Shown here: positions 19,768 to 22,700 of the stretch, piece after piece
Layout of the letters: each line of letters opens with the position of its first letter
Position numbering within the stretch: the first letter of the stretch is position 1
NCBI GenBank assembly: GCA_000320545.1
Contig: ADNK01001382.1
Location: forward strand, 18,706-82,705
Direction: 5' to 3'
Source of the DNA: Bigelowiella natans CCMP2755
Taxonomy: Eukaryota > Protista > Cercozoa
DNA: 64,000 bases
The notes under the pieces: generated by a model
Database searches by the model: none
Told to the model about the DNA's origin: nothing
What the model saw: the letters and a program-made list of their open reading frames with translations, nothing else
Made by a program: the position numbers and the translations under genes

Positions 19768-22700
19768 ATGGGAGGCGGACTGAGCAAGGAGGTCTGGGAA
19801 GCTGTGGAGAAGAATGACCTAACTGCGCTGAAACTGCTGATCAAGAAAAATGCAGATATCGAACAGAAGGATAGAAAAGGTTAGCTTGGTTGGGAACGGA
19901 GAGAGGCAGGGTTAGCGAGACTCTGGGCGAAGAATATTCGAAGGGTTGATGAGAAAAAAATGAATGGGAAAAGAGCACGGAGCAGTCATGAAACAAGCAA
20001 AGTTCGTGATGGGGGACGACGGAGTTGACATTTTTCATGAAGCACAATGAGCTTGAGTTCGAATGATGATGTCACTTCATGCAGAGGCTAAAGTTTAGTG
20101 GATTTGTAGGAAACAGCAGCAACCTTCATTGATGTTGACCATGAGGATGCAAATAAAACTCATGTTAAGAATAACTGATGTGTACTTAAGTGTGTATTTG
20201 GGCAGTTGTGTAGTGTTTGGTGTTAGCCTCTTTGATGAGGCTGGTAACTTAGCAGATTCTTTTGTTTGTTGTTTGATGTACTGTCATTTCCGAATGATGA
20301 TTTGTTGGGTGCTTTGTTTTGCCAGGTGAAACCCCTCTGTTCTATGCGTCGAGAAAGGGACACGAAAGGATCGTGACGTATCTGGTTGAGTCGAAGGCGA
20401 ACATCGAGGCGAAGGATAATGGCGGTGAGTAAGAACATTCGAGTTAGTGCGGCAGGATTTTTTCATGCACATTGAGGGATAGAATGACACCAATGAAGAG
20501 CATGAATCATCACATTGAATGAGCATGAAGATTCCATCTGAAAATGAAAGTATAAACGATAAATACCAATCTTGATGCCAATCATGAGGATGCCAACACT
20601 GCTCATGTTATGAAGAGCCGATGTGCATTTAACAGTATGCATTTGTGGAGTTATATAGCATTTGGTGTTAGCCTTTTTGATGAGGCTGGTAACTTAGCAG
20701 ATTCTTTTGTTTGTTGTTTGATGTACTGTCATTTCCGAATGATGATTTGTTGGGTGCTTTGTTTTGCCAGGTAGGACCCCTCTGAGTTTTGCGTCGAGAA
20801 AGGGACACGAAAGGATCGTGACGTATCTGGTTGAGTCGAAGGCGAACATCGAGGCGAAGGATAATGACGGTGAGTAAGAACATTCGAGTTAGTGCGGCAG
20901 GATTTTTTCATGCACATTGAGGGATAGAATGACACCAATGAAGAGCATGAATCATCACATTGAATGAGCATGAAGATTCCATCTGAAAATGAGAGTACAA
21001 GTAGTAATAAAGGAAGAAAGAGGAGGAGGAGGAGGAGGAGGAGGAGGAGGAAAATGAAAGCATCAAACTGTCCCATCATCAACAAACGACAAATACCGAT
21101 CTTGATACCAATCATGAGGATGCCAACACTGCTCATGTTATGAAGAGCCGATGTGCATTTAACAGTATGCATTTGTGGAGTTATATAGCATTTGGTGTTA
21201 GCCTTTTTGATGAGGCTGGTAACTTAGCAGATTCTTTTGTTTGTTGTTTGATGTACTGTCATTTCCGAATGATGATTTGTTGGGTGCTTTGTTTTGCCAG
21301 GTAGGACCCCTCTGAGTTTTGCGTCGAGAAAGGGACACGAAAGGATCGTGACGTATCTGGTTGAGTCGAAGGCGAACATCGAGGCGAAGGATAATGACGG
21401 TGAGTAAGAACATTCGAGTTAGTGCGGCAGGATTTTTTCATGCACATTGAGGGATAGAATGACACCAATGAAGAGCATGAATCATCACATTGAATGAGCA
21501 TGAAGATTCCATCTGAAAATGAGAGTACAAGTAGTAATAAAGGAAGAAAGAGGAGGAGGAGGAGGAGGAGGAGGAGGAGGAAAATGAAACCATCAAACTG
21601 TCCCATCATCAACAAACGACAAATACCGATCTTGATACCAATCATGAGGATGCCAACACTGCTCATGTTATGAAGAGCCGATGTGCATTTAACAGTATGC
21701 ATTTGTGGAGTTATATAGCATTTGGTGTTAGCCTTTTTGATGAGGCTGGTAACTTAGCAGATTCTTTTGTTTGTTGTTTGATGTACTGTTATTTCCGAAT
21801 GATGATTTGCTTTTGGTGCTTTGTTTTGCCAGGTTGGACCCCTCTGATCTATGCGTCGGAAGAAGGACACGAAAGGATCGTGACGTATCTGGTTGAGTCG
21901 AAGGCGAACATCGAGGCGAAGGATAAATGGGGTGAGTAATAATATTCGAGTTAGTGCGGCAGGATTCTTTCATGTACATTGAGGGATAGAATGACACCAA
22001 AGAAGAGCAGGAATCATTACACCAAATGAGCATGAAGATGCCATGTGAAAATGAGAGTACTAGTTGTAGCAAAGGAAGAAAGAGGAGAAGGAGGAGGAGG
22101 AAAATGAAACCATCAAACTGTCCCATCATCAACAAACGACAAATACCAATCTTGATACCAATCATGAGGATGCAAGTAATGATGATGTAAAAAACAAGAG
22201 GGATTTGAGAGTGTTAGAGAGAGTGTTTAATTATTTGAGTGCATATGTTTGTATGTTTATATTCGTGTGTGCTTGTATGTGCTTATGGGTGATTGCGGTG
22301 TTTGGTGCTAGTTGTCGAAGAATGTTGGTTAATTAGTTGACCGCTTGTTCGCTCGTTGTTTTTCTGTTTCGTTCGAATTATCATCATTTGCTGCGCGCAC
22401 CTGAATTTGCCAGGTTGGACTGCGTCGGATTTAGCAAATGAGCGTATCGACAGAATCCTTAGGACGGCGAACCAAAACAACAATGTATGATTTAGTACAT
22501 GCCCAATGCGATGTATTTTTGGTACATGCCTAATGCGATTAAATATTCCGTATGTTCAAAACGACAGGGATTGTCTTAAAATTCTCAGATACGAAATACG
22601 AAATATAAACAATGTTTGATGTTTGAATAAGGCGTTTGGCTATCCATTATATCCCGACAACAAGAATTGATTAACTGTTGTCCCTTTTCTCTCGTTTCCT

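Follow-up and report, generated by a model that had tools for sequence, protein, structure and literature searches.

A hypervariable array of one-repeat ankyrin exons as the probable sensor part of a Roc-COR-CHAT-STAND-like protein in Bigelowiella natans

Vertebrate ankyrin genes, too, place one ankyrin repeat on each exon, without homogenisation or hypervariability, and in classic DARPins positions 2, 3, 5, 13, 14 and 33 of the repeat are randomised. A design of fast-evolving repeat receptors is known from brown algae and fungi, and we found it described neither for ankyrin exons nor for the lineage of Bigelowiella natans. In the LRR-ROCO genes of the brown alga Ectocarpus (PMC3341825, PMC11378527), one repeat is encoded per symmetric exon ahead of Roc-COR, the concave face is under positive selection, recently duplicated genes such as the pair Esi0032_0115/0138 (PMC3341825) are near-identical save for repeat number and sequence, some cassettes are inactivated, and repeat exons are used in non-ROCO genes as well. 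The high-internal-conservation (HIC) NLRs of fungi, studied in Podospora with ANK, TPR or WD40 repeats (PMC4986451, PMC13449251), feature ANK repeats that are near-identical apart from hypervariable residues of the inner helix and the hairpin, evolve in concert and change in number, and they have a linked NTPase and death-type effector. DARPin and ANK-N5C libraries (PMC4308713, PMC8683736) are built from an N-cap, internal repeats of constant framework and a C-cap, with positions 2, 3, 5, 10, 13 and 33 of ANK-N5C randomised to form one binding surface (PMC4308713), while ankyrin repeats N-terminal to Roc-COR occur in ANK-ROCO proteins of oomycetes and Gonium (PMC11378527) and in animal DAPK and LRRK.

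Several of these traits recur in B. natans: in the 64-kb stretch of its DNA analysed here (the window), a four-cassette ankyrin array is the N-terminal, probably sensing part of a 36-exon gene for 1588 amino acids. An analogy to brown-algal LRR-ROCOs and fungal HIC NLRs, drawn in an earlier note on this DNA, is supported (PMC3341825, PMC11378527, PMC4986451), and the window gene and its paralog on contig C2356 mirror the Ectocarpus pair. In contrast to the 72-nt, phase-2 LRR exons of brown algae, whose exon-shuffling receptors use LRR or TPR repeats, the B. natans exons are 99-nt, phase-1 ankyrin cassettes; they belong to Rhizaria instead of stramenopiles, the protein carries a fused CHAT protease and STAND-like tail, and neither reverse-strand intronic cassettes nor intergenic import were seen in the part of the genome covered. 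Fungal HIC repeats are defined by more than 85% identity combined with hypervariable contact sites, and the window cassettes, with variable contact codons, are 88-100% identical in DNA. The fungal repeats, however, lie C-terminal to NACHT/NB-ARC, whereas those of B. natans lie N-terminal to Roc-COR, each on its own exon between homogenised introns, and strain polymorphism and cell death were shown for the fungi, whereas the likeness of B. natans is read from the sequence of one genome. The variation coincides with the library positions 2, 3, 5, 10, 13 and 14; unlike the libraries, the array is of natural origin, with variation at position 9 and hardly any at position 33, and there is no evidence of a within-organism library in B. 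natans. Hypervariable cassette arrays or a CHAT effector were not reported for ANK-ROCO proteins (PMC11378527), and the B. natans protein differs from DAPK and LRRK in having no kinase. A literature search of incomplete coverage returned no description of the cassette family or of an ANK-Roc-COR-CHAT-STAND protein.

Each of the cassettes E1 to E4 (Table 1) is 99 nt long, bounded by AG and GT, in phase 1/1, and encodes one ankyrin repeat, with its exon borders splitting the codon of the beta-turn glycine. The earlier note had described four such one-repeat exons; borders, phase and a Pfam Ank match (E 6e-7) agree with it, and RNA contigs show the splicing. The register of the cassettes against solved ankyrins and DARPins is unambiguous, and the variable sites were placed by register against solved DARPins and the literature. 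Recounting reproduced the differences given earlier (8 nt between E1 and E2, 12 between E4 and E2, none between E2 and E3) and added 11 nt for E1 and E4; E3, identical to E2, is by this identity an apparent recent in-array duplication. The claim that all differences are confined to seven codons and replace the residue also held: 15 columns vary, all within ankyrin positions 2, 3, 5, 9, 10, 13 and 14, every changed codon alters the amino acid, and none of 200,000 random placements of the variable bases reached seven or fewer codons. Silent divergence of the scaffold in the window is 0, as opposed to 15 variable columns among the 21 of the binding face. The flanking introns, previously called near-identical, indeed show only 3-7 mismatches per 346-431 aligned nt, with an 85-nt gap in the first, and a repeat unit of 530 bp fits the second and third start-to-start spacings and not the first, which makes the array less uniform than had been proposed.

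Table 1. Features of the cassette array and of the gene that carries it (positions in the window)
Feature	Positions	Strand	Basis or remark
Exon 1: start MGGGLSK and N-capping ankyrin repeat	19768..19879	+	upstream in-frame stops; weak Pfam Ank; RNA joint to E1
Homogenised exon+intron tandem units	20130..22175	+	spacing 445, 530, 532 nt; introns 0.7-2% apart
Ankyrin cassette E1	20326..20424	+	99 nt, phase 1/1; RNA contigs
Ankyrin cassette E2	20771..20869	+	exon borders; RNA contigs; Pfam Ank
Ankyrin cassette E3	21301..21399	+	sequence identical to E2
Ankyrin cassette E4	21833..21931	+	exon borders; RNA contigs
5' part of intron after E4, retained in minor transcript	21932..22175	+	alternative donor 22176; contig depth 17.7 in RNA run X15
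C-capping ankyrin exon	22414..22484	+	RNA joints
Roc GTPase, 7 exons, with insertion	22749..24322	+	G1 GKEHTGKT, G3 WDFAG, G4 GTKID; RNA joints to 23731
COR domain	25102..26319	+	COR-A start 25102; 3' limit approximate
About 270 residues between COR and CHAT, without domain assignment	26504..28377	+	identity to paralog C2356 falls from 96-100% to 72-79% near 26,950-27,000
CHAT (caspase-like) protease domain	28610..29350	+	His-Cys dyad; model; Foldseek
STAND-like P-loop NTPase and short helical tail	29560..30565	+	Walker A GPKRIGKT, Walker B LLIIDD; stop 30563-30565

The gene model, from 19768 to 30565, contains GT-AG introns only and a single open frame, and the nearest relatives of its product are annotated B. 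natans proteins. The joints between exon 1 and the Roc region are confirmed by RNA contigs and the last five exons by transcript L051. For the modelled middle exons, support comes from a paralog transcript whose alignment covers residues 137-775 and 775-1588 and is interrupted by a single retained intron, a point across which an MMETSP protein runs. Domain searches were performed exon by exon and on this paralog transcript, on which C-cap, Roc, COR, CHAT and STAND are linked, and the encoded order is ANK4-Roc-COR-X-CHAT-STAND-like. Pfam Roc was matched with E 2e-7 on one window exon and E 1e-17 on the paralog transcript, and Pfam COR-A weakly (E 0.049) on one window exon and above cut-off (E 1e-10) on the 62% identical paralog transcript; for the COR-CHAT linker, an atlas search returned nothing. 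Pfam CHAT misses the window copy and matches its relatives. The catalytic residues H81 and C131 are kept and invariant in a 23-sequence alignment, and an alignment-based model reached a pLDDT of 85 (46 for the single-sequence fold) and matched SAVED-CHAT 8TL0 in Foldseek (E 1.5e-10, TM 0.73) as well as caspases. SAVED-CHAT and protist CHAT-STAND proteins share the fold and the His-Cys dyad, and oomycete and ciliate relatives likewise place a STAND-like P-loop after CHAT, but Roc was found in 0 of the 16 relatives scanned, whereas the B. natans CHAT lies downstream of ANK-Roc-COR. The STAND-like domain gave only weak nSTAND3/AAA matches, its relatives carrying NACHT, NB-ARC or AAA_16, and the protein ends without repeats about 220 residues past Walker A. 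Because the repeats are N-terminal and there is no C-terminal sensor, the protein is a ROCO by membership and not an NLR. The Roc-COR-CHAT-STAND context of the array, which the earlier note had not mentioned, is the main clue to its function. The start of exon 1 fits a predicted N-myristoylation-type consensus, as does MGSGSSK at the start of the paralog on C3059.

Elsewhere in the window, we noted a gene read by eye as RhoGAP-like and TPR-like (12694-18361), a long intronless ORF of 736 aa (45327-47537), an ORF that by eye resembles 1-Cys peroxiredoxins (53352-53891), and a 70-nt tandem repeat of 3.7 copies (55997-56253) that overlaps the start of the ORF 56051-56932.

Searching the genome with the Roc exon gave nine close matches, and with the CHAT exon about ten close and some twenty distant ones. 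On C2355, C2356, C1548, C3059 and C777, Roc is preceded by a cassette array, and the CHAT-STAND tail is present on the first four of these contigs; the regions upstream of the Roc matches on C2592, C3236/C3237 and C1834 were left out of the array census. Some 25-30 loci of the genome (G000) combine CHAT with a STAND-like domain, one member of which starts with MGCGVSK, a possible dual lipid anchor as judged from the motif. Comparison with C2356 revealed 94-100% identity from 19033 to about 26,950 of the window and 72-79% thereafter, with a sharp switch, and the tail of C2356 is closer to that of C1548 (89% in CHAT). Read from these identities, C2356 would have arisen when a sensor-switch half was recently copied to a different effector half. 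This chimera of a window-like front and a C1548-type tail (G000:C2356, about 21000-32900, L031-L033) suggests swapping of sensor and effector modules by conversion. Although only 23 of 1977 nt differ in the coding DNA from C-cap to COR (1.2%; 98.8% identical), the five cassettes of C2356 have none in common with the four of the window, and any cassette of C2356 is separated from any of the window by 6-15 of the 21 binding-face nt and by only 2-3 of the 75 scaffold nt. The last C2356 cassette contains an in-frame stop in the assembly, a two-base change adjoining codons 13-14. Between C-cap and COR (window 22414-26849), the two copies differ by 21 non-synonymous codons and 1 synonymous codon, which may reflect relaxed constraint, selection or chance. 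A 4618-nt transcript contig (L054) is a mosaic of a C3059 front, a C2356-like middle tail (98-100%) and a C1554-like end (99%), and may represent a strain recombinant or an assembly chimera.

Collecting cassettes beyond the window yielded 171 in 24 arrays of 2-29 units, all with the identical 99-nt phase-1 build and with family-specific intron lengths; this census covers part of one genome, and the roughly 50 contigs with matches are a lower bound. Since the majority of the arrays read are without Roc or CHAT, the cassette system is wider than this Roc-CHAT receptor. Over the 24 arrays, binding-face divergence amounts to 0.345 per base compared with 0.108 for scaffold synonymous sites and 0.117 for flanking introns, and it exceeds silent and intron divergence in 23 of them (p 2e-7). 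Variation in this set, of the kind that the earlier note had proposed to collect, is not spread evenly over scaffold and surface, the binding face diverging 3-4 times as much as silent and intron sites. Fitted omega was 1.94 (LRT 28.6) for the seven binding-face codons, a set chosen from the window itself, and 0.55 for the scaffold; the six DARPin positions fixed beforehand gave 1.85 (LRT 20.5, p 6e-6), and IQ-TREE 2.6-3.0 for the binding face versus 0.5 for the scaffold. Plain counting gave a lower 1.2-1.4 for the binding face because multi-base codon changes inflate the inferred silent change. The omega tests assume a single tree, which recombination violates, and the contrast to silent and intron sites is therefore the more reliable result; with this caveat, the statistics show diversifying selection on the binding-face codons, as had been supposed for the ligand-facing residues, with omega of 1.9-3 as against about 0.5.

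Four-gamete violations between the helix and hairpin blocks, which may also stem from recurrent mutation at saturated codons, occur in 14 of the 18 arrays with at least four cassettes, and many cassette pairs share one of the two blocks exactly and not the other. Statistically, these patterns indicate that cassettes have been duplicated, lost and recombined, and together with four versus five cassettes in window and paralog and with the mosaics they favour the unequal crossover or conversion of homogenised units postulated earlier. Donor cassettes, which the earlier note had also considered, found no support: no orphan, inverted or intronic non-coding cassettes were present in the 64-kb window on either strand, and codon-level sharing between cassette subfamilies was not found in the part of the genome sampled. 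Among the other arrays, the one at 1296-7380 of C1330 (L034) comprises at least 29 standard cassettes, one of which carries a stop, and four in-frame short ones of 87 nt that lack four helix-1 residues. Single in-array cassettes with a damaged acceptor or donor, resembling the inactivated Ectocarpus exons, were seen in L035, L036, L041, L050 and L028. At 137-4860 of C1331 (L050), the array is followed by a stretch that by eye is SAM-like and caspase/metacaspase-like and was read as a second sensor-protease fusion, and in C2798 (L036, 1-5900) another gene ends C-terminally in an array of 14 cassettes that resemble those of the ROCO paralogs C1548 and C3059.

How this variation arises was weighed against several alternatives. 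An assembly artefact, be it a false duplication or C2356 as an alternative haplotype, might be suspected as E2 equals E3, Logan contigs cannot count copies and no long read spans the array, yet it is very improbable: E1, E2 and E4 are distinct from one another, 3 sites separate introns 2 and 3, the flanks of C2356 are unrelated and its 3' half and tail are of another kind, which speaks against an allele, and both copies occur together in one DNA run and again in one RNA run. The several-fold raised depth over the cassette unit in the DNA run and the presence of the paralog's letters likewise argue against an artefact. Contigs of RNA run X15 contain the joints N-cap to E1, E1 to E2 and E4 to C-cap, and the joint into the start of E2/E3 has a depth of 61.8, double that of the gene-specific joints, supporting two copies; these depths, taken from assembled contigs, are rough, and the raw-read RNA run comprises 18 reads only. 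Alternative splicing by in-frame skipping of cassettes, advanced in the earlier note, is improbable as the main source of receptor diversity, even though every cassette is a symmetric exon of 3n length, splice sites are damaged in cassettes of some arrays, skipping is reported in brown-algal ROCOs (PMC11378527), and one X15 joint (21398>22413) resembles the skipping of E4. The depth of this joint (31.7) and that of E4 to C-cap (31.3) sum to the 62 of the C-cap contig shared by both, transcripts of the paralog exist, and the end of its last cassette lies one base from that of E3; the joint is therefore most probably the regular junction of the paralog. Furthermore, depth over the constant cassette core (257-270) amounts to roughly nine times 30, the value that inclusion of all 4+5 cassettes would give, and the rates of skipping in B. 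natans are under dispute and show no 3n bias (PMC6142364). Use of the alternative donor at 22176, in a contig with zero differences from the window copy where the paralog differs, leads in translation to a stop immediately past E4 and to an ANK-only or NMD isoform. Another X15 contig matches up to the start codon (19774) and continues into an unrelated MG-starting sequence, for which no third genomic copy was found. Two short unspliced pieces of a seawater metatranscriptome (run X20) match 22350-22676 with at least 99% identity and may be DNA, pre-mRNA or contamination.

A neutral by-product of tandem exon duplication, with purifying selection on the scaffold, a drifting surface and an ordinary signalling Roco, would account for variation at the positions of high entropy in any ankyrin set (PMC4308713), and the paralog's in-frame stop and its excess of non-synonymous changes in Roc-COR hint at relaxed constraint. 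Drift, however, cannot outpace the silent rate, and within the same units the divergence of the binding face is 3.6-4 times that of silent and intron sites, and in the window it varies over a silently invariant scaffold; this reading is hardly likely and already largely contradicted. Targeted or somatic diversification, in which a local mutator or regulated rearrangement acts in clonal growth in an adaptive-like manner, is unlikely as well. It could draw on the multi-base nature of half of the binding-face codon differences, on a fitted dS at these codons 2.3 times that of the scaffold, on four-fold sites within 4 nt varying more (0.123 versus 0.067, p 0.04, the sites not being independent), and on the two-base change to stop in the paralog's last cassette. 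The multi-base changes, raised dS, nearby silent excess and paralog stop are most simply explained by linkage to selected codons; at variable sites, codons for the same residue show no excess of silent change (0.099 versus 0.088-0.122), and all non-reference letters checked in DNA run X1 were the paralog's, in contigs that drop rare variants. DGR-type mutagenesis was rejected because no base was favoured (A 1.02, G 1.12, T 0.92, C 1.07); a DGR template copy appeared neither in the window nor in the genome DNA search, and templated import from other arrays was rejected as well, residues in common mostly using different codons. A regional mutation hot spot does not fit the quiet TPL codons between the variable sites, although a weak proximity signal remains. 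Searches for alleles of other strains gave one unrelated protein, and a metagenome scan two unrelated loci. The interpretation offered in the earlier note is thus supported for selection, recombination and the analogies, and not for exon skipping or orphan donors; a somatic or programmed mechanism found no support either.

We therefore favour, with a probability of roughly two in three, a non-self receptor of innate-immune type, with a sensor that evolves through heritable repeat shuffling combined with diversifying selection. Unequal crossover or gene conversion between the near-identical exon+intron units would create diversity and at the same time keep scaffold and introns alike, crossovers within introns and within the invariant 54-nt core of the exons would re-deal helix-1 and beta-turn blocks, and the symmetric exon phase would leave every product in frame, with selection favouring point mutations at contact codons. 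Such diversification would be heritable, across generations, and not a programmed somatic change. The ANK domain, presumably membrane-tethered, may bind a variable foreign ligand, for example a giant-virus, bacterial or other non-self protein, which would drive the Roc-COR/STAND switch to dimerise or oligomerise and activate the CHAT protease, with defence or cell death as the outcome. A role against viruses or other non-self is plausible given the strain-specific resistance of chlorarachniophytes to giant viruses (ChlorV), which have been cultured (PMC13196603). A far bolder reading, and a long shot, would be an adaptive-like system in a unicellular rhizarian, in which binding-face codons and cassette order are actively diversified in clonal growth by local multi-base mutagenesis and/or regulated rearrangement. 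The resulting natural DARPin repertoire would be coupled to a caspase-like protease under Roc-COR control, by which infected cells would be killed or protected.

If the favoured reading of a heritably shuffled non-self receptor is true, ankyrin would be the third repeat type, after LRR and TPR, and this the third lineage to have converged on one-repeat-per-exon receptor diversification, here with switch and protease joined to the sensor in one protein. Hardly anything has been described of non-self recognition in Rhizaria, and B. natans is unicellular, culturable and genome-sequenced, with giant viruses in culture for chlorarachniophyte strains. The questions posed for Ectocarpus since 2011, whether cassettes diversify somatically and what they recognise, would become directly testable in this organism, and the arrays would amount to a DARPin library made by natural selection, from which the positions and residues that evolution employs in binding can be read.
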